A DNA stretch of 64,000 bases, taken from NCBI GenBank assembly GCA_009859145.1, contig VRVR01000054.1, forward strand, positions 124,001-188,000. Reading direction: 5' to 3'. This document shows, piece by piece, positions 30,335-57,653 of this stretch (its first letter is position 1; each line of letters begins with the position of its first letter). The stretch comes from Andalucia godoyi And28. Its lineage: Eukaryota > Protista > Jakobida. The position numbers and the translations under genes are program-made. The notes under the pieces are model-generated. The model made no database searches. It was given only the letters and a program-made list of their open reading frames with translations, and was not told the DNA's origin.

Positions 30335-30639
30335 TCCTTTTTTCTTTCTGTAACCGAGTCGTCCTTGTCTAGTCGAATGTTATTCTCGCCTTTTACTAGA
30401 ATAACCCGTGGACTGGGACATCAAAAGGCTCGCCATATCTATTTTTTGGGCTCCTTTTCCCAGGAGATTCTCTTACACACTTATACAGTTTTTCTCCCCT
30501 CACTCTCCTTTAAGATTATCATTAAAGCAAAACAACAAAACACAACACAACACAAAACAGAAGACCAACGCAGAATGCGAAAACATTTACGGGTTTGCTT
30601 AAATACCGCTGCCCGTTACACACGGCGACACACACATAT

Positions 30640-32139: not shown

Positions 32140-34944
32140 ATGGAAGCTGGTGAAGAAGAGCAGCATCCGCAAAGGTCCAGGGATGCTGATGATGGTCATA
32201 GAGAAGATGATGGTGATGATGATGGTGATGGACATAGTGAAGATGGAGGACAAGGAGAAGGCGAGTTTGAAATCAAGGATTTTTCGAATGCATCGATGTT
32301 GGAGCGATTGTCGTCGAGATTGGCGACCTTGATACCGATTGTACTTGGAGATAAGAATACGGTGCATGATCTCGAGTTTGATGGAAAGTCGTTTTCGCTC
32401 GAGTATTGCTGCTTGGAGGGATGCAGTGGGTTTGAATGCACGCCCTTGGTCTATGGAGACCCGCGGGAAGATGCAGTGTTTGACACACATGGGGAGTTTT
32501 CACTGCGCATTCTCGGTCTTTTGCACGCGCTCATCTTCCGAATCGACGAAAATCGCATCGATGGTCAGTACGGAAGCGTATCCGTGCTGTGCAATTCCAT
32601 CCGATCGGCGCTGCTCGTAGCCCTGCATCATGATGTTCGTCATAGTCATGGCCGAAATGTGGCAAAAGGAAGGGTAGTAGGATGTCATGCTGCGGTTCCG
32701 GTCTTGGTGCTCGTTGGTCAGGCCTTCGGTCTCGGGTTCGATCCAACAACAAGACTCGACTTTTGCATCCATATCAAACCGCGGAACCTTAATTTGCAGA
32801 CGTTTCCGAAACCGGGTCTTTCGCGACGACGCACGGAAACCTCCGTATCACTCTCTCGGCTGCTTTCAGTATATCCATCTATGGATGCCGCTTCAAGACC
32901 CGCAAAACAAGGACAACCCGGGCAGCAGCACATGCCATGGGTGCATGTGTTGGAAGAATATCTGGGCGCAGATGGACTGTTTGGGACGTATACAGACCCG
33001 GTTTCGGCGTTTGTGTTTGGAGTCGAGACGGAAAATGACACACCAAAACACTACGACATGCGCGTCGTGTTGCAGCCGTGTGACTTTGGCATTTCGGCGC
33101 AGATACAGAGGTTTGTCGATTTTCTGGCTCTGTGTGAGCGCATCGAGACTGCACATGCGCCGTCGGCTGCTTCCGACATTGGCGTCAAAGATCGGAGCGC
33201 ATCCTCCTCCTCCGCTTCATCTCCATCTGCGTCTTCGCCATCAGCAGCAGCATCGTCATATTTGGATTTTGCGGCTGGATTGTTTGAATTGGATGTTTCA
33301 GCGCTGCGAGAAGCAAAGGAGGCGATCGAGAGCGTCTTTTCGGCGTCGTCGGCGACACTTGAGAACTCGGCGAAAACAGAAAATGACGAGGCTCGCGAAA
33401 AGGACCAGTTTTTGTTGCTCGATACTACGTCGCGGAGGCTGTTGGTTCGGGTCGCAGAGTGTGAAACAATTGGGCAGTTTCGGGCATTTTGGCTCGAGTT
33501 CGTGCGGCGGTTGCGCTGGTTTTGGGAGTCTGGAACGCCGATTCCGGGAGTTGCGGTGCCGCTTGACCATGCTGCAGAGGACCGAGGGAGCGCGCTGAAG
33601 TCCCCTACAACGCCTACTTCGCCGACGTTTTCTCTGCGCAGAGGTGTTCGAGAAGGTCTTGTGCGCAATGCAGTCGAGCGGAAGATTCAGCTGTTGCAGT
33701 ACTGCATTGTGCAGCAGTCAATGAATCCTCCCAGCGCAACGCAAAACACGGCTGCTGCGGCGCACTCGGAAGTCCCAGTGGTCGAAGGATGGGAAATGGA
33801 CATTGTAATGGACGATGCGCCAAGTCAGCAATCGCAGCAGCAGCCTGCTGGTCTCGCGAAGGTGGTCACTGACAGGCCACCCGAGCCTACACATTCTTCA
33901 CAAACAAACACGGAAAGAGGTGGCGCAAAAGAACGGGATGGCGACGAAGATGAAGACGAGGACGAATTCTTTGATGCTCATGAAGCAGAGGAGTCTGCGG
34001 TTCCGCAGATTGCATCACCAGTGTTGATCCCCGACGATCCGTATCGTGCACGGCGTGAAGGAGCGTTGCATCCACTGTTGCGCCGGAACAAGCCTTTTTA
34101 TTCCTTTGCGGTACCAGACATGCCTCTGTATGTCCCGGAAACGCTGAAGCCGCCTCCTGATTTTGTTCTACTGGACGTGCATGGAGTGCAGGATTTGTCC
34201 GGAGTTCGCATATTGAAGTCTGACATGTCCAGCTTCAAAGCTGCGAATCCCGGATGTGATATGCGCGACTTTCTGCGCTGGCACTCTCCCAAGGACATTC
34301 GCGACGATGGATCCTATTCCGAGCGCTTCCAAAAGACATCGCATACTGGAGATTCGATGTGGGAAAATGCATGGGACCATTCGCTGCCCAAGCCTGCATC
34401 CGAGCAGCCGCCATTGCTGAACCTGGTTCGTGAGGCCGAGCTTGTGCTGAACGAACTCGAGGTCATGTCCCTACGCGAAGTACTCGTTACGATTCTACCC
34501 ATTGCATCTGCGCTGGGAATTCATCTAGCGCTGAAATCTCGCGTGTGCGAATCGTTCCACGTCGAGAAACATCTGCTGGACATAGGCCAACGGTCTGTGC
34601 ATGCATGGGAAGCATCCGAGACCGCAGACGAGTTTGCAGCGTCCGGGCTCGTGCATGGCATCCAATCTGCCGAGTATGCGGCTGCAGCAGTCGCGTCTTT
34701 GCTCTCCAAGTTTTCGCATTGCACGCGCGACTTGGCGGACATTGACCGCATTCTGGACTATTCCTTCCGCGACCCAGCCCAGCGCATCCCTGTCTCGGAG
34801 CACCATCTCGAAGGCTGGCATGTCAGCGAAACACCCCCTACCAGCGTCGAACACTTGCTCGTTTGGGAAAAACCTTTCCGCAGATTGTACATTGGAGCCG
34901 ACCTCTTTGCCCAGTCTTGCTCTCCCTTCCTGCCCAAGCCATGA
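32140..34944 (+). CDS. RAB3GAP1: Rab3 GTPase-activating protein catalytic subunit (Rab18 GEF complex)
   Basis: N-terminal FEIKDFSNASMLERL; C-terminal LKSDMSSFKAANPGCDMRDFLRWHSPKD and WENAWDHSLPKPASEQPPL...EAELVLNEL. Confidence 0.88.
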   Translation: MEAGEEEQHPQRSRDADDGHREDDGDDDGDGHSEDGGQGEGEFEIKDFSNASMLERLSSRLATLIPIVLGDKNTVHDLEFDGKSFSLEYCCLEGCSGFECTPLVYGDPREDAVFDTHGEFSLRILGLLHALIFRIDENRIDGQYGSVSVLCNSIRSALLVALHHDVRHSHGRNVAKGRVVGCHAAVPVLVLVGQAFGLGFDPTTRLDFCIHIKPRNLNLQTFPKPGLSRRRTETSVSLSRLLSVYPSMDAASRPAKQGQPGQQHMPWVHVLEEYLGADGLFGTYTDPVSAFVFGVETENDTPKHYDMRVVLQPCDFGISAQIQRFVDFLALCERIETAHAPSAASDIGVKDRSASSSSASSPSASSPSAAASSYLDFAAGLFELDVSALREAKEAIESVFSASSATLENSAKTENDEAREKDQFLLLDTTSRRLLVRVAECETIGQFRAFWLEFVRRLRWFWESGTPIPGVAVPLDHAAEDRGSALKSPTTPTSPTFSLRRGVREGLVRNAVERKIQLLQYCIVQQSMNPPSATQNTAAAAHSEVPVVEGWEMDIVMDDAPSQQSQQQPAGLAKVVTDRPPEPTHSSQTNTERGGAKERDGDEDEDEDEFFDAHEAEESAVPQIASPVLIPDDPYRARREGALHPLLRRNKPFYSFAVPDMPLYVPETLKPPPDFVLLDVHGVQDLSGVRILKSDMSSFKAANPGCDMRDFLRWHSPKDIRDDGSYSERFQKTSHTGDSMWENAWDHSLPKPASEQPPLLNLVREAELVLNELEVMSLREVLVTILPIASALGIHLALKSRVCESFHVEKHLLDIGQRSVHAWEASETADEFAASGLVHGIQSAEYAAAAVASLLSKFSHCTRDLADIDRILDYSFRDPAQRIPVSEHHLEGWHVSETPPTSVEHLLVWEKPFRRLYIGADLFAQSCSPFLPKP

Positions 34945-35600
34945 CAATCGGACACTCATCTCTATCCTTTTTCTGTTATACGCCCTCTCTAACCCACTGT
35001 TAAAACAAAAACAAATTAATAAAGCCTTTTATTTCACGCCTACATTGTACACGAACCACGGATAATCATCGCTGATCACCCATAATCAATGCTGCAACCC
35101 AACAACATGCATAATGCAACGCGGCGGCGTGTTTATAGGGATTCCATGATCAAAAATGGGAGGCGAAACGAATCGGGCATCGTGTGACGGAGTTGCCAAG
35201 ATAACAGACGCATGCGCATGGCGCGTGGCAAAGTGGTTCTGTTTACGTGCGCTGTAAATTGCTTTATCATTTCGCAATAGGTGGCAACTGCACTCGATTG
35301 GTCATGAACTGCTGGGCTGCTGACCGCTGCTCCCTTGCTTGGCCTTTCCCTTACTTTTCGTTTTGTTTTTAGTTTTCCTTCTTTGCACTTATAATTGTTA
35401 TTGTTATTGTTATTGTTATTGTTTACAGTGTATACGAAGCGGTGCGTTTTTTGTGGCTTTCCCCGTGGTTATTTATCGGTTTTGCTGATATAGCTGATAT
35501 AGCTGATCTGGCTGATATAGAGTAAGTGAGTGGGTGAGTGCGCTGCGAAAAAAAAAAGAAAAAAAGAAAAAAGGATAACATCATCAGCATTATTGATAAC

Positions 35601-37457
35601 ATGTCGTCTGGTGCTTGTGAGTGGATGAGGATCCGGACGCGTGACGGGACAGAGTACTACTTTAATACAGTGACAACGCTTACGACGTGGGATCCTCCAG
35701 AGCCCGACGCCGATACTGCAGAAGGGTGGATCCTTGCGTTTGACCAATCTGGGAAATCATACTATTTCAACCCGACGACGAAAGCCACACAGTGGGAAAA
35801 GCCGGTGAAGAAGGGCACACTTGCGGAAGACGCCGAGCAGGACGATGGACACATAGAGTTTGTGAATGGGATGCATAAAGGAGTGGTGCAGACATCGCCA
35901 AAGGCTGCACCGCCGGTTGCGTCGAGAAAAGACATCAATGCAGACGTCGGGTCATCCTCGGAAGATGACGATGATATGGTGGCCAAGTCCTCGTCGAGTT
36001 CTGGCGGGGCGTCCTTGTCGAGTTCGGGTCATCATACAGCGTCGTCGTCCAATCCATCGACTCCAACTGCTTCTGCAAGCAAAGACAAGGCTTCGGAAAA
36101 GAAGAAGAAGACTGCCGCTGGCAGAAAAGGAAAAGCATTTGTGACGCTCGAAATGGAACGTGCTGTCGATCCTCTTCCTTCTTCGAAGGATGCCAAGGAG
36201 GGAAAGGAGGGCAAACATGCAAAGGACTCGGAAAAGAAAAAAGGGTTCTTTGGCGGGCTGTTCAGTCGCACAAAGACTGCATCGTCGTCGACGCTGTCGG
36301 CAGGCGGAAAGGTGTCCGCTCGGGCGTACGATGCTTGGAGGTTCCACAAACACGTTGCCACAAAGACGGTTCTGGACATCCCAATGGAAAATCTGTCATG
36401 GTTCGGTTCTGTGCCAGAAGCAGTGTACGTGTATTGCGGAGACCGCCAGCCGTCGAAGAACCTGGCGAGTGCATTCACCACGCAGAATAAGGCGTACGCT
36501 CCGGATCTGATCAAGGCGATCTTCCAGGGAATTCTGAAGTATCAGATCGAGCAGCCGGGGCTAAAGAACGAGATCTACATCCATATCATGCGGCACTTGA
36601 ACGGCAATCCTCGGCCGGAGTCCGCCAGGGCGGCGTTGGATTTGCTGAATGTGGCAATGCATTTGCTGTTGCCACAAGAAGATTTTGTCGCTGCTCTGGC
36701 ATCGTTTCTCGTCGAATTGCAAAAGCCAGAGAATAACGTGCATGAATTGCCCATCGAGATCATCTCGTATCTGATGGATCGCATCCGAATGCTGCAGTCA
36801 CTGTCGAAGTTCCACCGATCCTGCAGCCCAGATCTCAACGAACTGGACTTCATCAAGAAACTGCCCGCAGTGAATCCGGTGTTCAATGTCACCGTGCACG
36901 AATACATGCTTTGGCAGAAGGAAAGAAACATCCAGGGAGATCTTCCGGTTATTTTAACAACATGTGCTGGTCTGATTGAATCTCTCGGTGGCTTCCGAAC
37001 ACAAGGAGTCTTCCGCCTGCCAGGCAACCAGGAAGCAGTCTCCGCGATTTGCAACCAGTTTATCGAGAGCGGGAGCCTGGAGTTGCTGAACAACTGCAAG
37101 GATCTACATGTGGTCTGTTCTACATTTAAACTCTGGTTGCGATCTCTCGCCGAGCCAATCATCCCGGTCGACTTGTACCAAGTTTGCGTCCAAAAGTCAA
37201 AGGATCCGCAAGCTTGCATTGCTCTCGTACAGTCAATTGATCCAACGTCGCTCACAATTCTGAAATGGGTCATTTCGTTCGTTTCTCGATTTTGCGTCGA
37301 GAGCGTTGTCAAGTTGACAAGCATGTCCACCGAGAATCTCGCAATCGTCTTTTGCCCAAATTTGCTGCGCGATCCCATGGCTCGTCCAGACACGATTCTC
37401 CAAAATTCGTTTGCGGAACGTGCATTCGTCACCAATTTGCTGCGAAGCTGGAGATGA
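35601..37457 (+). CDS. ARHGAP39: WW-WW-MyTH4-RhoGAP protein (ARHGAP39/Vilse-like)
   Basis: ATG at 35601. Two WW domains (EW...EYYFNTVTTLTTWDPP; GW...SYYFNPTTKATQWEKP), MyTH4-like LKNEIYIHIMRHLNGNP, and RhoGAP GVFRLPG / FKLWLRSLAEPIIP / MSTENLAIVFCPNLLR. Confidence 0.8.
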   Translation: MSSGACEWMRIRTRDGTEYYFNTVTTLTTWDPPEPDADTAEGWILAFDQSGKSYYFNPTTKATQWEKPVKKGTLAEDAEQDDGHIEFVNGMHKGVVQTSPKAAPPVASRKDINADVGSSSEDDDDMVAKSSSSSGGASLSSSGHHTASSSNPSTPTASASKDKASEKKKKTAAGRKGKAFVTLEMERAVDPLPSSKDAKEGKEGKHAKDSEKKKGFFGGLFSRTKTASSSTLSAGGKVSARAYDAWRFHKHVATKTVLDIPMENLSWFGSVPEAVYVYCGDRQPSKNLASAFTTQNKAYAPDLIKAIFQGILKYQIEQPGLKNEIYIHIMRHLNGNPRPESARAALDLLNVAMHLLLPQEDFVAALASFLVELQKPENNVHELPIEIISYLMDRIRMLQSLSKFHRSCSPDLNELDFIKKLPAVNPVFNVTVHEYMLWQKERNIQGDLPVILTTCAGLIESLGGFRTQGVFRLPGNQEAVSAICNQFIESGSLELLNNCKDLHVVCSTFKLWLRSLAEPIIPVDLYQVCVQKSKDPQACIALVQSIDPTSLTILKWVISFVSRFCVESVVKLTSMSTENLAIVFCPNLLRDPMARPDTILQNSFAERAFVTNLLRSWR

Positions 37458-37720: not shown

Positions 37721-39685
37721 TTATCCCCATGTGGGAGAACTGACCAGAAACAACGAGTTTTCGCGATTCTTGATGAACTTGGTAACAGCCTTGGCGATAT
37801 TCGTCACAGCAGTCTTGTTCACGAGACCGTCAACGAGCAAGCAAAGCGCGAACTGCTTCGTAAGGACAACGTAGACTGCTTCTGCACCGCCGTCCAATCG
37901 CATGTAGAAACAGGGCTTTGACGACGTGGTCCCGCGGAGGTTTTCAAGAGCCTGTAAATACAAGTTGATAATTCTCTTTTGCTCCGGCTTAGTGTCGTAT
38001 GGACGTTCAAATGCTGGGTACGCAACTTGCGCGGTAAGCAGAGACTTGTAGCAGAAGTGAAGGAGGGAGTGCATTGGGATTGACGGAACAACGGACGCAG
38101 AGAATCCGCTGATGGTGCAAGCATGCATGATCGAGCTGATGAGTGCTCCGTTGTTCTCGTGAAACCGCTGAACAATTCGCTCGCGACCGGCAGACAGACC
38201 ATTCAAGTCTTCTGGAGAAGGCGAGATTATGGCAAGATACAACTTCTCATTCAAGAATGAAATGTACGCATAAACGAACTTGGTCTCGTCAATCCGCGGC
38301 AAACAGATGGGTGTCCATGTCTCGGATTGGTGCATGGAGGATGCATTTGCAGTAATGAAGTTGGTCAACAGCGCAAGATCCATGGGATCGACAACGCGAT
38401 TCTTACGTCGAACAATCTGGATGACCTCGTGACCAAACATCAGCATTGCGAAAAACGTGTATTGCGTCTGCGCATCCTTTTCCAGAACGTCGCCCACTCG
38501 CGTTCGAAGCTGTCTGGGCATATCGACGCATTTCACGCCACCAAGAGCAAGCGCGAGGTTGGAGCCCGTCCAAGACGCCAACTGATGAAACACAATTTCT
38601 GTGCCGCCCAAAAGGGATCGCAAATCATACGAGGGATTCTTGATAAGAGTCCCCGAAGCGCCTTTCAAAGTCAATATGAACACAATTTGCCTGTAATACA
38701 AATCGAGATGCGTTCGAAGCGTCAATACGCTTTCTCTTCCGCGCGACACGCAACACAAATAAATGGGCCCACGAATCAAAAATACAATCTTGTGGTTTCC
38801 GGCTTGGACAGACACCAAATGATCGTGGTCCTTTCCATTCGCCACGAATGAAATTAGTGCTTGGACGACTCCAAAGAACGCCGTCAATTTCGAATCATCG
38901 CCGTATCTTGTGAAAATCGGTTTTCCTGCTGCAGAAAGAACAAACACGTGTTTCTTTCGTTTCTGAAACAACGGATCAAATGTCCCTCCTTCCATCTCTG
39001 CAGCCGCCGCCGCCGCTTCTTCAGCAACGCTTTCTGCTTCTTCAGCATGTCTCTGTTTCTCTGCAGCTTCCGCCTCCTGTCCGTCGGAACGAAGAGCACC
39101 AACACCCCCCGTTTCACGGTCTTTTGCACGGCTCCTATCGAGAACATCATCGCCATGAGCCATTTCGACGACTCCATTCTCGTCAATAACCATCCTTGTG
39201 AGCCTTCCATCCGTCCCAGAGCCAACACTGCTCCTGGAACTGCTTCTGCTGCCTCGGTTCTTCGTTTCGCTATTCAGCACTGAACTCCACTTCAAGTTTA
39301 GCCGAGATGAAGACGCCGATGCATTCTCGGAAGAAACAGATCCACCACCACCACCTCGCCTCTCACGCTCTCCAAGCACGTCTGCGCCGTGGATGTGATC
39401 CATGTCTTTTGGAAACCCTCCTGCCTCCTCCTCTGCCTCCTCCTCTGCATCACCAGCACCATCCGCACCATCCGCACCATCCGCACCAGCAATCCGGCTA
39501 TCAGCGACATGGTCATCGTGCATGAGATCCTCTGCAATCGGAATCGGACTTGGCTGATGCTCTCCCCAAAACGAAGACGCCCGTCCAATGCGAAACGGAG
39601 TCTCCGGATGGGCCGCAGAACTTCCCAAGACTTGCGCGTCGGCATCCACATCCACCCGATCCGTCTCTTCTTCTGAATCGCTCAT
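37721..39685 (-). CDS. MON1: Vacuolar fusion protein MON1/SAND (Rab7 GEF subunit)
   Basis: KHVFVLSAAGKPIFTRYGD, NPSYDLRSLLGGTE, ETWTPICLP, FVYAYISF; acidic disordered N-terminus. Confidence 0.95.
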   Translation of the reverse strand: MSDSEEETDRVDVDADAQVLGSSAAHPETPFRIGRASSFWGEHQPSPIPIAEDLMHDDHVADSRIAGADGADGADGAGDAEEEAEEEAGGFPKDMDHIHGADVLGERERRGGGGGSVSSENASASSSRLNLKWSSVLNSETKNRGSRSSSRSSVGSGTDGRLTRMVIDENGVVEMAHGDDVLDRSRAKDRETGGVGALRSDGQEAEAAEKQRHAEEAESVAEEAAAAAAEMEGGTFDPLFQKRKKHVFVLSAAGKPIFTRYGDDSKLTAFFGVVQALISFVANGKDHDHLVSVQAGNHKIVFLIRGPIYLCCVSRGRESVLTLRTHLDLYYRQIVFILTLKGASGTLIKNPSYDLRSLLGGTEIVFHQLASWTGSNLALALGGVKCVDMPRQLRTRVGDVLEKDAQTQYTFFAMLMFGHEVIQIVRRKNRVVDPMDLALLTNFITANASSMHQSETWTPICLPRIDETKFVYAYISFLNEKLYLAIISPSPEDLNGLSAGRERIVQRFHENNGALISSIMHACTISGFSASVVPSIPMHSLLHFCYKSLLTAQVAYPAFERPYDTKPEQKRIINLYLQALENLRGTTSSKPCFYMRLDGGAEAVYVVLTKQFALCLLVDGLVNKTAVTNIAKAVTKFIKNRENSLFLVSSPTWG

Positions 39686-47051: not shown

Positions 47052-47648
47052 CTACTGCTTTACAGAGAGATCGAGAAACTGTGCATACGACGAAAGGGAC
47101 GCCAAGAGAGGAGTATTCGGATCCTCCTTCGCGGCCATTGGTGTTTTCGAAACACACGAAACGGACCCGCGCACCGGATATACAATCTGCCGGACAGAGT
47201 CTATTTTCCATCCGAGCGGAGTGAAGAGCGACACAGCAGCATCGGCATCGGCATTGGAGCCGAGAGGGATTCCCAGAAACGAGCAAGCTTCGTGCAGGCT
47301 CAAGTCGGAGTATGTGTTTGAGATCGCAAACAAGACACGGCGTCGAACCGTCGGAACGAGCTCGGAGGCAAGGATGCTTCCAACGCTCGAACTCGATAGC
47401 TCCTGTGCGTGCTGGAAGAACGATTGGAAATCATGGTTCCAAAGATCCCTCACGAGCTCAAAACACCCGCGAACAACTGCATCAGAAGAATACTGTGGAT
47501 ACAACGAGTGGAACCGTTTGTGCACGAGCCGCGCGCTCGGCAGCTTGTCCTCTGCAATACATGCCAATATGAACTCTGCGTAGAATTGTGGGCTGCCTGC
47601 AGACGCATTGCACGCCTCTTGGACTCCATATTCTTGCAAGCTGAGCAT
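47052..47648 (-). CDS. COPS8: COP9 signalosome subunit 8 (PCI domain)
   Basis: FYAEFILACI...ARLVHKR, LWNHDF, VRRRVLFAISNTYSDLS, LGWKID, LASLSSYAQFLD follow the CSN8/PSMD8/eIF3K pattern. ATG at 47648, downstream of a CACATA repeat. Confidence 0.8.
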   Translation of the reverse strand: MLSLQEYGVQEACNASAGSPQFYAEFILACIAEDKLPSARLVHKRFHSLYPQYSSDAVVRGCFELVRDLWNHDFQSFFQHAQELSSSSVGSILASELVPTVRRRVLFAISNTYSDLSLHEACSFLGIPLGSNADADAAVSLFTPLGWKIDSVRQIVYPVRGSVSCVSKTPMAAKEDPNTPLLASLSSYAQFLDLSVKQ

Positions 47649-47682
47649 TTGCTGATCCCTCCGTATCTTTGTTGTATATATC

Positions 47683-47742
47683 TGTGTGTGTGTGTATGTG
47701 TGTGTATGTGTGTGTATGTGTGTGTATGTGTGTATGTGTGTG
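47683..47742. repeat. (TG/TGTGTA)n repeat upstream of COPS8
   Basis: Direct inspection. Confidence 0.9.
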
Positions 47743-48115
47743 AGACGTCCGACGTGCTGGACGGCTCCGCAAAAGAGTTTCACGTGCGGGGAACGCTTCG
47801 GTCTACAGTTGCTGGATGTCGGCCAGTATCAAAAAACATCAAGTCTCAAGGCATCGAATCGCGAACCCAACTTGCTTCTTTTGTTTTGTTTTTTTTTTAC
47901 AGCAGGGAGTCGATCGGTGCGATGACTGATGTGTGGTGAAGTGGCCAACATGTGTTGAGCTTATGAGTCCTGTCGAAAAACACGCACTCCGATCGATCGA
48001 TGGATTGCGACATGCAATTTGTGATAGTGTGTGCGAACTGCAAAAGCGAGTGAGAAAGTTCCGAGTGGCACGCGCAGCACCGTTGGTAGGATTTTCTTTT
48101 CTCTTGTTGCGGACA

Positions 48116-51103
48116 ATGGGCTGCCAAGGATCAAAAGCAGTCGAGATGCATTCAGAAGAAGCACAAGCTCAGTGCTCTTCTCGCCAGCCAATGCACACGT
48201 TCACAACACCGGGTTCGGACTTGGGTGATGACCAAGAGTCCTTTGTGAGGATTCTGCAGTTGTCCTTGGGCTCGAAGGAGCAGGAGCGTGTTTTAAAGTC
48301 ACTCCTGCTTGTGATATGCACTGCGTTCAGCGCAGAGGCTGCGGTTCTTCACGTTCTCGGCGATGACAAAGTGATGACAATCGTTAATTATTCTGGTGCG
48401 TCTGGCAGCACGAGCGGCGGTGGGAGCAATTCGTTTGCGACTGCTATAGACAAGCTGAGCAACAGTGGAGTGTGTGTGCTGAAGCGTAGTCAGTTTCTGA
48501 TGGAACAGATGTTGGAGGACGAGGAGGAAGAATTTGTGCTACTAAGTCACTCGGAAGTCACCAGCGCAGAAAGGCCGTTGTGGAGGGATACCTGGAAGAG
48601 CATTGGGCCCGTGGAGTTTCAGGCGTCGGTGCCTGTTCGCATCACCGTACAGTCGTTCCGGTTCTCGAGACCCGTGGCCACGCTTTCGGTGCTGGATTCT
48701 CATGCGCGACAGGTGTTTGGCGCCGACTGTCTTCGGAATCTGACACTGTTTGCGGATCTCTGTGGATTGCAGCTGTCAAACTGCGTGCAGGTTGAGCAAG
48801 AAGCTGCGAAAGAAAGGGCTGCAGCTGCAGCTTCGATGGCAGTAGGAAAGCAAAGCGCGCGACTCGGCCAAGAAACAGACCCGTTCAAGGATCGCACTTG
48901 GCTGATTCAAGATGCGGCGACAACAGCAGCCGATCTTTCGCATCTACCCTGGGCGTTAGCCTGGAACGAGGCATTCCCGCGTCCGCCAATACCGGCAGAT
49001 GACAGAAGCCGCATTTTGTGCGTATTAGAATACGATCTGCTGAATTTTCATCAGGAGCCTCTGTTTGACGAGTTCTGCAAATTCACTGCGGAATTGTTTG
49101 GATTCCCGCTCTCCGTGATATCGGTGCTGACCGCTGACGCACAGTTTTTCAAAGGACGGTTTGGCCTCCAATTGTCGAAAATCGACCGGTCTGCTGCCCT
49201 GTGCAACTACCCCACGAAGAAAAAAACATCCTTCGTCGTGCAGGATCTTGCGCAGCACAAGGAATTCCAAGAAAATCCTCTCGTGAACGGCGGGGCCATG
49301 GCGCTCCGCTTCTATGCTGGAGTTCCGCTTATCGTTGAAAGCGGTCACGCTGTGGGAACACTTTGTCTCCTAGACTGCCAGGCACACCCAGAATTCGGAA
49401 ACGAGGAAACGAGGCTTCTGGAAGGAATTGCAGCCGTTCTCACACACCTGTTAGAGGAGCGCAGGAAGCGGCTACGGTACATGGCCACGATGCTTGATTT
49501 GCCCCATTGTGGCAACGGCCATGAGCGGTATACCACCGACCCACCGCAAGGCTATGCAACTTTCGTGGCTGCAGAAATTGCCAACGCGGAAAGGCTGTGG
49601 TCAGTCGATCCTCGCGGAATGGAGAGTGCCGTTCGATCATACTCGTCTGTGCTTCGTGCCACATTGTCTCTCTACCGAGGATACGAGGTGTCGTGTCAAG
49701 ACGAGAGCTTCCTCATTGCATTTCACAACGCAGTAGATGCATGCAGCTTTTGCACTGCCGTGCAGCTGAGAATGCTCCAGGAAAAATGCTCGGACGAGTG
49801 GCCAGCTCACGTTTCGGACCCGCGCATTCCAGGTGCTGACGGACACGGGCTGTGCTACGGCGGAATACTAGTGAACTTTGGCTTGGAACAGGGGGCTCTA
49901 GAGTTCCAGTCAATGAATCCAGCGTCGGAACGACGACGCTACTTCTGCCAAGCCGCTCTCCGTGCAACCGAGATATGCAGATCCATCATCATGCAGGGCG
50001 TAGCGGTCATGACCTCGTTGGTGTGGCACGATTATTACCGATGCCGCTTCCACAGCGTGGCTCATACCCCAGCAGACACGATGTTTCCGACCATTGTGCA
50101 TCTTGGAGAGTTTTTGGAAGATGAAAACACAGGTCAACTGCAGAATCTGTTTATGATGGTGCCTGCGGAGCTGACCTGCAAGTCTTTTCGGGGGCGTCCG
50201 GATCATCCGTGCTCCTTTGTCGAATTATGCTCCTACGGACGCCCGTTGCACAACGACGTGTTAAGGCTGCAGAAGATCGCTTGCGGATGTCTCGATTCTC
50301 CGAAAGGTTCTTCCGCTGCCGTCGTTCGAGCGACTGTCTGGCGATGGCGACAGATGCTAGCGGAGTGCTGCAGCACCGAAGTCGTCGCCAGCACGTCGGA
50401 CATGATCTGCAGTGTCTTTGTTTCGCAAGCCAGGGCCCACAAAGGATACATTTTCAACCACGAACACACCAATGCAGTAGACCTTGTGTTTCCGTCCATC
50501 CACAAAGCCGTGCACTGGGTGTTTGCAGTGCAGAACGTCCTGGTGAATGCATCGTGGTCTTCGCAGCTGCTAAACATTCCTGGGTACGAAGAAGTCAAAG
50601 ACTCCAACGGCGATTTCGTTCTCTTCCGCGGCCCCCGCATTCAGGTGTCTGCATCGGATCTGTGGACAAAGGACTCCGTTCTTGTCCCGGATCTCGATAC
50701 AGGACGCTTGAAAGCATCCGGTACCATCATGCAAGAGGTTGCGCGGCTGTCGAAACTTGCGCAGCCAGGCCAGTTTCTGTGCTGTCGTGCAACAGGCGTG
50801 CGAGCAGTCGAGTCCTTTAATTACTTCAGATCAAGCAATGTCAAGCAAAGAATTTTTAATCAGAACCGACACACGACCAGCGACGATGCCGACACGGAAG
50901 ACGATGAGCCAGCAGAAGAGGAGGATGACGAAGAAACGGATAGGTTTGACGACGATGAATATGTGATCAGAAACGTCTCGTTCGAACCAGACTGCAGTGT
51001 TGTCGGCAGTATTGTGGAAGTGGCTCCGACCAATGGCGCCCTTTCCTATCGTCGTTTCCCTGCTGTTCTGCCTGCAACTCCAGAATCAAGCTGTTTGCAA
51101 TAA
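48116..51103 (+). CDS. N-acylated GAF-GAF-tandem class III nucleotidyl cyclase-like protein with substituted catalytic residues
   Basis: Starts MGCQGSK. GAF domain: RILCVLEYDLL...FDEF...QFFK...NPLV...RFYAGVPL...GTLCLLD. Two cyclase-like domains: GYATFVAAEIANAERLW...YRGYEVSCQDESFLIAF, and W..QLLNIPGYEEV...FRGPRIQV...MQEVARLSKLAQPGQFL. Confidence 0.8.
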   Translation: MGCQGSKAVEMHSEEAQAQCSSRQPMHTFTTPGSDLGDDQESFVRILQLSLGSKEQERVLKSLLLVICTAFSAEAAVLHVLGDDKVMTIVNYSGASGSTSGGGSNSFATAIDKLSNSGVCVLKRSQFLMEQMLEDEEEEFVLLSHSEVTSAERPLWRDTWKSIGPVEFQASVPVRITVQSFRFSRPVATLSVLDSHARQVFGADCLRNLTLFADLCGLQLSNCVQVEQEAAKERAAAAASMAVGKQSARLGQETDPFKDRTWLIQDAATTAADLSHLPWALAWNEAFPRPPIPADDRSRILCVLEYDLLNFHQEPLFDEFCKFTAELFGFPLSVISVLTADAQFFKGRFGLQLSKIDRSAALCNYPTKKKTSFVVQDLAQHKEFQENPLVNGGAMALRFYAGVPLIVESGHAVGTLCLLDCQAHPEFGNEETRLLEGIAAVLTHLLEERRKRLRYMATMLDLPHCGNGHERYTTDPPQGYATFVAAEIANAERLWSVDPRGMESAVRSYSSVLRATLSLYRGYEVSCQDESFLIAFHNAVDACSFCTAVQLRMLQEKCSDEWPAHVSDPRIPGADGHGLCYGGILVNFGLEQGALEFQSMNPASERRRYFCQAALRATEICRSIIMQGVAVMTSLVWHDYYRCRFHSVAHTPADTMFPTIVHLGEFLEDENTGQLQNLFMMVPAELTCKSFRGRPDHPCSFVELCSYGRPLHNDVLRLQKIACGCLDSPKGSSAAVVRATVWRWRQMLAECCSTEVVASTSDMICSVFVSQARAHKGYIFNHEHTNAVDLVFPSIHKAVHWVFAVQNVLVNASWSSQLLNIPGYEEVKDSNGDFVLFRGPRIQVSASDLWTKDSVLVPDLDTGRLKASGTIMQEVARLSKLAQPGQFLCCRATGVRAVESFNYFRSSNVKQRIFNQNRHTTSDDADTEDDEPAEEEDDEETDRFDDDEYVIRNVSFEPDCSVVGSIVEVAPTNGALSYRRFPAVLPATPESSCLQ

Positions 51104-56052: not shown

Positions 56053-57060
56053 TCATGTCTCGGCATCGCGGAGAGGACAGAGTTGATCCGGAGGGGATTC
56101 CAACAAGGGAATTCCAAACTCGTCTGCGCACACACCGTTGGAGATCTCGACTCTGCGGACCGTGTTTTCCAGTTTTCGGATGCCAACGTTTGCAGAGTTT
56201 CTGTCATAGCGCTGCTTTCTGCCCAAGCAGTAGCTGATCTTATCGACGTACATCATTTTCAGTTTTTCCGAGTACCCGAATACAACAGCGTTCAGCAGTG
56301 GCGTGCTTGGCTCAAAGATGGCCTGCATATAGAACAGCCAATCCTGCTGCAAGGACGGGTTGACATACCCCAGAATTCGGTTCACGAGTCCCCATACCCA
56401 GCAGAACCCAAACACGACAATGAATGCCAGCAACCGCCGCTGCACCTTGTGTCTCGCTTCCAGGTTACCTCTCGTCGACGATTGCGGAAGCACTTTGATT
56501 TCGATCGTCATCCGCCGAATCACGAGAAATGACGCCACAACATTGAACATGAACACAAAGAACAGGATGCCGTAGCCAAAGTAGATGCGAGCTGGATTCT
56601 GGTCGCCCTTGATCCAGCAGTGATGCGGTCCTGCAGGACCGAATTCATTGTGTTCATACAAATATGCAGTCATGAAGCTCGGAAAGCCCCACGCAATAAC
56701 ATGATACACAGACTCCCACCAAAACACTCGCAGCGAGCTTCCGGGTCGAAGATTCGAGAATGCAACTCGAATGAGATGAACGGCCAGAAACAGCATCCAA
56801 AACAGCCCTGCGAATCCAAACATCTGGATCAAGCTTGCCTGTGTCGTGCACAGATGGTCATCTTCCACCACAAACGGCGACAAGAACCATGCACACGAAT
56901 CGAAAAAATCCGCAATCGACAGCCAAAGCACCAGCCGTTGACGATGATGCGAGAGCGTTCGGAACATGCAAAACGACACAATCACAAATAACGCACCGAG
57001 GATGCCAAAGCTCGCAGACACGGCAACCACGATTGATATTGTTGTCGGCGACGGCGTCAT
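56053..57060 (-). CDS. 7TM GPCR of the cAMP-receptor-like (CAR/GCR1) family
   Basis: Seven hydrophobic segments. SASFGILGALFVIVSF, RLVLWLSIADFFD, LCTTQASLIQMFGFAGLFWMLFLAVHL, YHVIAWGFP, GPAGPHHCWI, VFGFCWVWGLVNR, LLNAVVFG. ATG at 57060; the track start at 57075 is a GTG. Confidence 0.88.
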   Translation of the reverse strand: MTPSPTTISIVVAVSASFGILGALFVIVSFCMFRTLSHHRQRLVLWLSIADFFDSCAWFLSPFVVEDDHLCTTQASLIQMFGFAGLFWMLFLAVHLIRVAFSNLRPGSSLRVFWWESVYHVIAWGFPSFMTAYLYEHNEFGPAGPHHCWIKGDQNPARIYFGYGILFFVFMFNVVASFLVIRRMTIEIKVLPQSSTRGNLEARHKVQRRLLAFIVVFGFCWVWGLVNRILGYVNPSLQQDWLFYMQAIFEPSTPLLNAVVFGYSEKLKMMYVDKISYCLGRKQRYDRNSANVGIRKLENTVRRVEISNGVCADEFGIPLLESPPDQLCPLRDAET

Positions 57061-57653
57061 CGCGATCCACTGCACAGAAGCCCCTCCTTTCTAAATATTT
57101 TAATTAAATAATAAAGATGTTTAAAAAAAATAAAACAACAACAATAATAATAATAATAATAATAATAAGAAGAAGAAGAAGAAGAAGAAGAATAATAAGA
57201 AGAAGAATGAAAAACCAACCCGACAACAAAACGAAAACCCCTCACTTGTCGAGAGTTGGTACTTTCTTCTTTGTGTCGTTCTTCCAACGTGATCGGAGGA
57301 CGACGATCGAGCCTTCTTAGCTTTTGTTGGGGGTCTTTGCTGAATCGCCAAAAAGACAAGCGGAGAGCCGCAGCATCCATTTTCGTTTTCTCATGGGTTT
57401 CCTTTGGAGAGAGAGATCTTTTATTTTCCCGCACTGTCGACGGCTGTCGAACGACTCGAGGTCCCTGATGAAAAGGTGCGGAGTGCTTTTCGGAACCGTT
57501 GAATCATAGCACGTCATTGTCATGCATACGGGGGGAGTATACACAAACAGACACGGTCGATACTGGCCGACACCAGCTCGTTTGTTTCACAGGAATTCGT
57601 GATACACGGCCTCCTACGTCCCGCATAAGTGAACGTTGGAGGAAACAGAAGGT

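Follow-up and report, generated by a model that had tools for sequence, protein, structure and literature searches.

Introduction

Class III nucleotide cyclases governed by GAF domains are known from Anabaena, where CyaB1 and CyaB2 are built of a tandem of GAF domains, a PAS domain and a class III cyclase domain, and the N-terminal GAFs regulate the C-terminal cyclase module (PMC4411481). Here we describe a gene of the jakobid Andalucia godoyi And28, located in a 64,000-nucleotide stretch of contig VRVR01000054.1 (positions 124,001 to 188,000, forward strand; hereafter the window, from whose first letter all coordinates are counted). Its product, here called the GAF-cyclase protein, resembles CyaB1 and CyaB2 in that tandem GAF domains at the N-terminus, the first of them a putative one, stand ahead of a class III cyclase module at the C-terminus. 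However, the CyaB GAFs bind cyclic AMP (cAMP) through the NKFDE motif, while the GAFs of the GAF-cyclase protein are devoid of it; and each CyaB protein, which is bacterial, has one homodimerizing cyclase domain, while the GAF-cyclase protein is eukaryotic and has an intramolecular pair of cyclase domains, C1 and C2, with a degenerate site.

Two cyclase domains in one chain also occur in soluble adenylyl cyclase (sAC, ADCY10) and in the transmembrane adenylyl cyclases, with the metal-binding Asp residues in C1 and the Asn/Arg pair in C2. Unlike the GAF-cyclase protein, sAC has no GAF sensor; in addition, the cyclase subtype found here is trypanosome/fungal-like, with an EWP insertion and a degenerate residue set. 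The closest solved cyclase domains, by sequence as well as by fold, are those of Trypanosoma brucei GRESAG4 (1fx2 and 1fx4), but these belong to single-domain homodimerizing receptor cyclases with canonical FTDIESS, GD and N..R motifs and a periplasmic-binding-protein ectodomain. A tandem class III cyclase-like fold from Pseudomonas aeruginosa has been deposited as an ATP-binding protein (6yii). Going by the title of the entry, it would bind ATP without being an enzyme and would be a precedent for a pseudo-cyclase; it differs from the GAF-cyclase protein in being bacterial, in having no GAF domains and in showing no detectable sequence relationship. As for the sensor, the closest solved GAF domain (30-31% identity) is that of P. 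aeruginosa Dcsbis (PA2771), a dimerizing sensor which is likewise joined to a nucleotide cyclase of the palm-like superfamily, although the output domain of Dcsbis is a GGDEF domain (a cyclic di-GMP synthase) and not a class III cyclase domain.

In layout the protein corresponds to a GAF-regulated class III cyclase such as CyaB1 or CyaB2, from which it differs in the GAF type, in a tandem pseudo-heterodimeric body like that of sAC or the transmembrane enzymes, and in the degenerate site. Judged by its sequence, the GAF-cyclase protein belongs to a protist family of tandem class III cyclases, within which it stands alone and has diverged strongly. We consider it somewhat probable (roughly 0.55) that it is a pseudo-cyclase whose C1-C2 body, controlled by the GAFs, serves for binding or as a scaffold.

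The tandem cyclase body

Residues of the GAF-cyclase protein are numbered from the Met encoded at 48116; translation from this ATG gives 995 residues, starting with MGCQGSK. The layout is GAF-A, GAF-B, a helix, C1, a linker and C2, which would be that of a cytosolic, possibly acyl-anchored signalling protein.

The preliminary description, which had been made from the sequence alone, had proposed two cyclase domains, and both were recovered, even though the Pfam model PF00211 gave no match on the protein at E <= 10. A family hidden Markov model (HMM), for which 67 cyclase domains of homologues but not the query were used, matched residues 471-665 (C1, 49526-50110, plus strand) with E 2e-37 and residues 764-893 with E 1e-14. 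The latter lie in C2 (residues ~735-893, 50318-50794, plus strand), which is collinear with the second cyclase domain of many homologues. In a PDB sequence search, residues 476-555 of C1 matched the GRESAG4 catalytic domains 1fx4 and 1fx2 (E 2e-4 and 9e-4, respectively); C2 was invisible to the Pfam and PDB sequence searches (the PDB search of residues 662-995 was empty). An exhaustive phmmer search of residues 455-995 against 1.84 billion representatives yielded 1956 matches at E <= 1e-3, the best with E 1e-50; between two and four PF00211 domains are present in each of the matches tested. A profile search returned only eight bacterial single-domain cyclases, and a word-index search with the whole protein returned GAF matches only, owing to candidate saturation.

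An AlphaFold2 (AF2) model of residues 460-905, based on a 15-sequence alignment, reached a predicted local distance difference test score (pLDDT) of 76 and a predicted template modelling score (pTM) of 0.69, and comprised two beta-alpha-beta-beta-alpha-beta units. Foldseek matched this model to 1fx4/1fx2 (E 2e-13) and, over both domains, to human sAC (E 4e-10); Rv1900c, soluble guanylyl cyclase, Ma1120, CyaC and 6yii (E 4e-8) were further matches. By homology, then, C1 and C2 are assigned to the class III cyclase fold family. The term 'trypanosomatid-type' that had been applied to them is apt for the fold subtype, the best PDB matches being 1fx2 and 1fx4, but it does not extend to the genome, which is not that of a trypanosomatid.

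The linker between C1 and C2 (50111-50317, plus strand) is partly conserved in the family (...LFxxVPxxLxxR...P.G), as seen in the collinear alignment. This bears on a different role that may be envisaged for the protein, namely that of a regulatory subunit which, rather than sensing nucleotides, pairs in trans with the active cyclases of its own organism or sequesters their partners. Such a role would suit the fact that cyclase homology domains are obligate dimers, and related protists have a large family of multi-domain members. In addition, GAF domains of the Dcsbis type are known to dimerize (PMC4937426). On the other hand, the presence of C1 and C2 in tandem, along with the conserved linker, favours an intramolecular pair, as does the pTM of 0.69, and a search within the 64-kb window found neither a paralogue nor a cyclase partner gene. 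A function in trans thus appears quite unlikely to us.

Downstream of C2 there is a C-terminal tail (50831-51100, plus strand) for which no homology was detected. It includes a strongly acidic run, SDDADTEDDEPAEEEDDEETDRFDDDEY (residues 922-949, 50879-50962, plus strand), also without homology.

Degeneration of the catalytic site

Seven site positions were considered (metal Asp 1, Lys, Gly, metal Asp 2, Asp(-7), Asn and Arg), and residues were assigned to them from two alignments, one with 26 collinear tandem units (C1-linker-C2) and one of 434 domains made with the HMM. The family consensus at these positions is DKGDDNR, to be compared with ESDERLE in C1 and -NTNKQR in C2. The two metal-binding Asp residues are present in neither domain: the first position is occupied by E487 in C1 (GAA, 49574-49576) and, in the multiple sequence alignment, by T740 in C2, and the second by E530 in C1 and N786 in C2. 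The Gly position is D529 in C1 (D529-E530, 49700-49705) and T785 in C2. Of the transition-state pair, Asn has been lost and Arg kept in C2 (Q873, encoded by CAA at 50732-50734, and R877), while both are lost in C1 (L615 and E619). Missing as well is the base-specifying pair, which is Lys/Asp for ATP and Glu/Cys for GTP: C2 has N781 and K866 at these positions, and C1 has S526 and R608. Hence three of the four residue-level features that were considered (metal Asps, transition-state Asn, base pair) are gone, and the transition-state Arg is the only one left.

These assignments agree with the preliminary description, according to which Glu replaces both metal Asps of C1 and the Asn/Arg pair of C1 is lost, C2 has lost its Asps while keeping the transition-state motif as Q..R, and Asn stands at the base-specifying Lys position of C2. 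The same residues were obtained in the profile and tandem alignments. No canonical Asp was found at either metal site when the alignment was aided by profiles and structure, the Asp closest to the point being D529, which adjoins E530.

The changes are not confined to these positions. The phosphate loop, which in the family reads FTD(I/V)xxST, is AAEIANAE in C1. Among the 198 family domains with Asp at both metal positions (D/D), 89% keep the loop residue T(-1), 95% S(+4) and 83% T(+5), and the GAF-cyclase protein has A, A and E in their place. Moreover, the family strand GLRVRMGIHTG has become GILVNFGLEQG. The loss of the Ser/Thr loop, the altered strand and the replacement in C2 of Asn by Gln, Lys by Asn and Asp by Lys therefore suggest a general relaxation of the site rather than a targeted remodelling. 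As for the metal pair itself, the 434 domains include, beside the 198 of D/D type, 13 of E/D and eight of D/E type; Glu at both positions (E/E) is limited to the GAF-cyclase protein, domain 5 of P0026 and domain 3 of P0032, and the latter two domains are likewise without the Ser/Thr loop.

The preliminary description had left the choice between a cyclase of altered specificity and a pseudo-cyclase. The evidence favours the second, because erosion reaches beyond the Asp residues into the phosphate loop, where the T/S/T set has become A/A/E, and into the GLRVRMGIHTG strand. In the family norm, C1 would provide the two metal Asps and C2 the Asn/Arg pair, so as to compose a single intramolecular pseudo-heterodimeric site. 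In the GAF-cyclase protein this site would have decayed through the Glu/Glu metal positions, the loss of the loop Thr/Ser/Thr, the Asn/Lys base pair and the change of the transition-state Asn to Gln, and the folded C1-C2 pair would have been kept as a nucleotide-binding or protein-docking module that makes little or no cyclic nucleotide.

It should be noted that several observations weigh against a pseudo-cyclase. Both metal positions hold a Glu carboxylate, and not a hydrophobic residue or Gly as dead sites of the C2 type usually do; D529, an Asp, is immediately adjacent to E530; and the transition-state Arg (R877) has been kept. Relatives contain domains with Glu at metal site 1 and an otherwise full site: domain 1 of P0026 reads FTEVQGS...KGDDNR, and FTEV..GS domains with otherwise complete sets are likewise present in P0025 and P0037. 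A single Glu at metal site 1 may thus be tolerated. In addition, Rv0386 of Mycobacterium tuberculosis is reportedly an active cyclase although Gln/Asn stand where Lys/Asp would be expected. In the model, the orientation of C1 relative to C2 does not superpose on that of human sAC (two-domain superposition, TM 0.25, root-mean-square deviation ~20 A), so that the packing of both domains around one composite site is putative. Finally, the searched collections (~15 billion proteins) provided no orthologue with which the conservation of the odd residues could be gauged.

The carboxylates, the retained R877 and the FTEV-type domains with complete sites in relatives, as well as the intact reading frame and the well-predicted fold, are what might be expected if the protein were an active cyclase, gated by its GAFs, whose site has been remodelled. 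Such an enzyme could use Glu/Glu for its metals (perhaps Mn2+ or Ca2+), Asn781/Lys866 for the choice of the base and Gln873/Arg877 for the transition state, and could form an unusual cyclic nucleotide, or else cAMP at a low basal rate raised by the GAF ligand. It would have to do so, however, after losing three loop residues, T(-1), S(+4) and T(+5), that 83-95% of the competent-looking domains keep, with GILVNFGLEQG in place of GLRVRMGIHTG, and with Gln (Q873) for the transition-state Asn. In mutagenesis of mammalian adenylyl cyclases, substitutions of this Asn are reported to lower kcat by one to two orders of magnitude. Furthermore, the other E/E domains of the family also look degenerate. 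An active cyclase is, in our opinion, doubtful. The fuller proposal of a working membrane-tethered and ligand-gated cyclase, in which the GAF pair senses a small molecule and the Glu/Glu metal site and Asn/Lys base pocket confer a metal or nucleotide specificity without parallel among characterized class III cyclases (e.g. for a pyrimidine cyclic nucleotide), we consider quite unlikely.

The GAF sensor

Two GAF domains had been predicted upstream of C1, the second of them close to the type found in bacterial sensor kinases and diguanylate cyclases. For this second domain, GAF-B (residues 291-455, 48986-49480, plus strand), both points hold. It matches Pfam PF01590 with E 2.7e-9 and, by phmmer, the GAF of Dcsbis/PA2771 (PDB chain 4zmu_A) with E 1.5e-17. 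Its AF2 model has a pLDDT >90 and finds 4zmu as the best Foldseek match (E 4e-14, 30-31% identity), far ahead of other GAFs. The core of GAF-B is strongly conserved. Just upstream, and overlapping its beginning, is a conserved pre-GAF motif, LSHLPWALAWNEAFPRPPIPADD (48935-49003, plus strand), which the alignment with relatives shows to be common to P0177; at the other end, a long helix in the AF2 secondary structure (residues 429-460, 49400-49495, plus strand) joins GAF-B to C1.

The evidence for the first domain, GAF-A (residues 37-215, 48224-48760, plus strand), is moderate. GAF-A is a divergent GAF-like region with no Pfam match; a search for homologues of the N-terminal 290 residues found none, and the PDB sequence search with residues 1-291 was empty. 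When aligned by hhalign with a GAF-B-type profile, however, it was matched end to end over 148 columns, with a probability of 73%, E 3e-5 and a score of 37.8. The scores of 150 composition-preserving shuffles came to 13.3 +/- 2.3 and never exceeded 24.4, so that none of the 150 reached 37.8 (z ~10). The AF2 model of GAF-A was of low confidence (pLDDT <50), as expected without an alignment. Sequence comparison thus suggests, with moderate and not strong support, that GAF-A arose by duplication of a GAF-B-type domain and then diverged.

The NKFDE motif (NK...Fx3DE) was sought in both GAFs of the GAF-cyclase protein and was found in neither. The Dcsbis GAF also lacks this motif; it is a dimer with a large hydrophobic pocket, and bound neither cAMP nor cGMP in isothermal titration calorimetry (PMC4937426). 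The Dcsbis-type GAFs of the GAF-cyclase protein would set the output of the C1-C2 module, and they would probably dimerize the protein and bind a small molecule other than a cyclic nucleoside monophosphate (cNMP).

Relatives and distribution

The relatives of the cyclase region come from diplonemids, a prokinetoplastid, Eutreptiella, Fabomonas, Tetraselmis, Chloropicon and uncultured eukaryotes. Their sequences point to a large protist tandem-cyclase family (diplonemids, prokinetoplastids, euglenids, ancyromonads and green algae) in which complementary C1 and C2 domains are the norm. In P0070, P0109, P0075, P0144 and P0099, C1 has FTD(I/V)xxST...GD with a dead Asn/Arg pair, and C2 is without the Asps but has D..N..R. 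The GAF-cyclase protein fits this pattern in having two cyclase domains with complementary degeneracy in one chain, collinear with the 26 tandem units. Consequently, the division of labour between C1 and C2 that had been noted in the preliminary description was correctly recognized, but it is a feature of the family, as the five proteins above illustrate, and not a peculiarity of this protein.

No orthologue was found among the ~15 billion proteins searched, and the GAF-cyclase protein remains a singleton whose nearest relatives are 24-33% identical. The most similar in layout are the pairs P0177/P0144 and P0178/P0099, from environmental eukaryotes, which share the organization GAF(-GAF)-C1-C2. 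P0144 (658 residues) and its longer cluster-mate P0177 (833 residues) are collinear with residues 227-881 of the GAF-cyclase protein, i.e. over ~650 residues, with E 4e-51 and 24% identity, and the alignment spans the pre-GAF motif (LSHL.W...W.E.FP.PPI), GAF-B, C1, the linker and C2. The N-terminal region of P0177 upstream of this segment is GAF-like as well, as judged with the same GAF-B-type profile (94% probability, E 1e-7), and P0178 (639 residues) is a GAF-C1-C2 protein. The difference lies in the site, which is canonical in these relatives: P0177 and P0144 retain FTDIENS, TEGDAF and GKMDYFGSLINKTARIA, with the D..N..R set, and P0178 has the canonical residues too. At 24% identity, orthology with the GAF-cyclase protein is not demonstrable. 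P0177, the closest relative of this architecture, originates from JGI sample 3300008470 (contig L001, 33-35% GC). No ATG precedes the called start in its open frame (L001 2-700), probably because of a 5' intron in the gene or a truncated call.

The preliminary description knew of no earlier account of the architecture. A search of the literature did not find any description of GAF(-GAF)-C1-C2 proteins, in agreement with this; it is not unique, however, since P0177 (GAF-GAF-C1-C2) and P0178 (GAF-C1-C2) carry it. There appears to be, then, a small eukaryotic family in which a soluble pair of cyclase domains is coupled to a non-cNMP sensor of the Dcsbis GAF type. By itself, one diverged paralogue from a single protist is of modest importance. 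Nevertheless, the canonical P0177 and P0178 and the degenerate GAF-cyclase protein offer a natural contrast, which could be used to study the roles of pseudo-cyclases and to learn which second-shell residues, besides the Asp/Asn/Arg set, catalysis requires. Moreover, GAFs of the Dcsbis type are common among bacterial kinases and diguanylate cyclases; a eukaryotic representative provides a further handle on their ligand.

Other members of the family, P0018-P0035 (diplonemids, Apiculatamorpha and Fabomonas), are very large and have four to six cyclase homology domains, in which competent and degenerate ones alternate. Several of these domains show FTEV, with Glu at metal site 1, and have the rest of the catalytic set complete.

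The gene, its start and N-terminal acylation

The gene is a single unbroken open reading frame (ORF) on the plus strand. From stop to stop, it extends from 47933 to 51103, with 1056 codons counted from a GTG and a TAA stop at 51101-51103. An intron or a frameshift artefact was ruled out, because the whole ORF is collinear with relatives. The codon-usage score is 0.16 in frame, as against -0.31 and -0.22 off frame. With ~1000 open codons, codon usage specific to the frame and structural cores that have been kept, the gene is still maintained and is not junk.

This bears directly on the idea of a recently inactivated paralogue, now decaying and without function, whose ORF is open only for want of time. 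That the protein is a singleton with no orthologue in the collections searched, that its catalytic motifs are widely eroded and that GAF-A has diverged past detection by Pfam would all be in line with decay. Yet the length of the open frame and its coding-like codon usage are not, and neither are the well-kept cores of C1, C2 and GAF-B (HMM E 2e-37 and 1e-14 for the cyclase domains; pLDDT 76 for their model and >90 for GAF-B); besides, with the nearest relatives at 24-30% identity, the divergence goes back so far that an ORF free of constraint would not have stayed open. We regard decay without function as highly improbable.

Where translation starts is less clear. The segment MGCQGSK (48116-48136, plus strand), read from the sequence, conforms to the dual-acylation consensus for a myristoylated Gly2 and a palmitoylated Cys3: it matches the pattern G-{EDRKHPFYW}-x2-[STAGCN]-{P} and is SH4-like, with Met-Gly-Cys and a Ser/Thr at position 6. 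There is, however, an in-frame ATG upstream (47963-47965, plus strand; MSPVEK...), separated from ATG 48116 by 51 codons with no stop among them. This upstream ATG is the start of the only database copy of the protein (P0001, 1046 residues, EukProt). The start at 48116 is favoured by its purine-rich context, ACAATGG, which resembles that of other first ATGs in the window, the context of 47963 being CTTATGA. It is disfavoured by the database model and by the coding-like character of the 51 upstream codons, which have a codon-usage log ratio of 0.23 (coding mean 0.24, non-coding mean -0.01), a score that stop-free intergenic windows reach in only 6.5% of cases and off-frame windows in 4.4%. The odds that translation starts at the MGC codon are, in conclusion, roughly even. 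The N-myristoylation and Cys3 palmitoylation proposed earlier are thus sound as far as the consensus goes, but the predicted acylation, and with it any anchoring to a membrane, would work only if Met 48116 initiates.

Directly 5' of the ORF lies a long T-rich tract (47873-47903) ending in ...TTTTTACAG, which could be a promoter, an element of the 5' untranslated region or the 3' splice site of an unrecognized upstream exon. Two short upstream ORFs (ATG 47922 and ATG 47950) follow on its 3' side. Farther upstream, the divergent spacer between the GAF-cyclase gene (plus strand) and a CSN8/PSMD8-like gene (minus strand) contains an imperfect TG/TA-rich microsatellite (47679-47742) with ~6 copies of the unit TGTATGTGTG, which makes the minus-strand ORF 47052-47783 look longer at its N-terminus than it is.

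Genomic setting

The window has a GC content of ~51%. Its long ORFs, roughly 24 in number, alternate between the strands and are separated by short spacers, as is the case for a compact, intron-poor eukaryotic genome, and this organization is similar to what has been published for A. godoyi (PMC7050145). The neighbouring ORFs encode a Dicty_CAR-type seven-transmembrane (7TM) receptor, a WW-MyTH4-RhoGAP protein, MON1, a Rab3GAP catalytic subunit, an ALO-type flavin adenine dinucleotide (FAD) oxidase and a CSN8/PSMD8-like protein. A trypanosomatid origin of the DNA, which the GRESAG4 matches and the T-run/AG upstream of the gene might suggest, was ruled out by the Dicty_CAR G-protein-coupled receptor and WW-MyTH4-RhoGAP neighbours and by the alternating strands.

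The receptor gene (ORF 56053-57075, minus strand), with a 7TM domain of the Dictyostelium cAMP-receptor type (Dicty_CAR, E 2e-16), is situated ~5 kb from the GAF-cyclase gene; the closeness of a cAMP-receptor-like gene to a cyclase-like gene may be a coincidence. The Rab3GAP catalytic-subunit homologue (32140-34944, plus strand), the WW-WW-MyTH4-RhoGAP protein (35538-37457, plus strand) and MON1 (37721-39685, minus strand) form a conventional eukaryotic trafficking and signalling set within the compact genome. In a spacer between two minus-strand ORFs, a full-length U5 spliceosomal small nuclear RNA gene is present at 30353-30468 (plus strand; Rfam RF00020, 72.7 bits).

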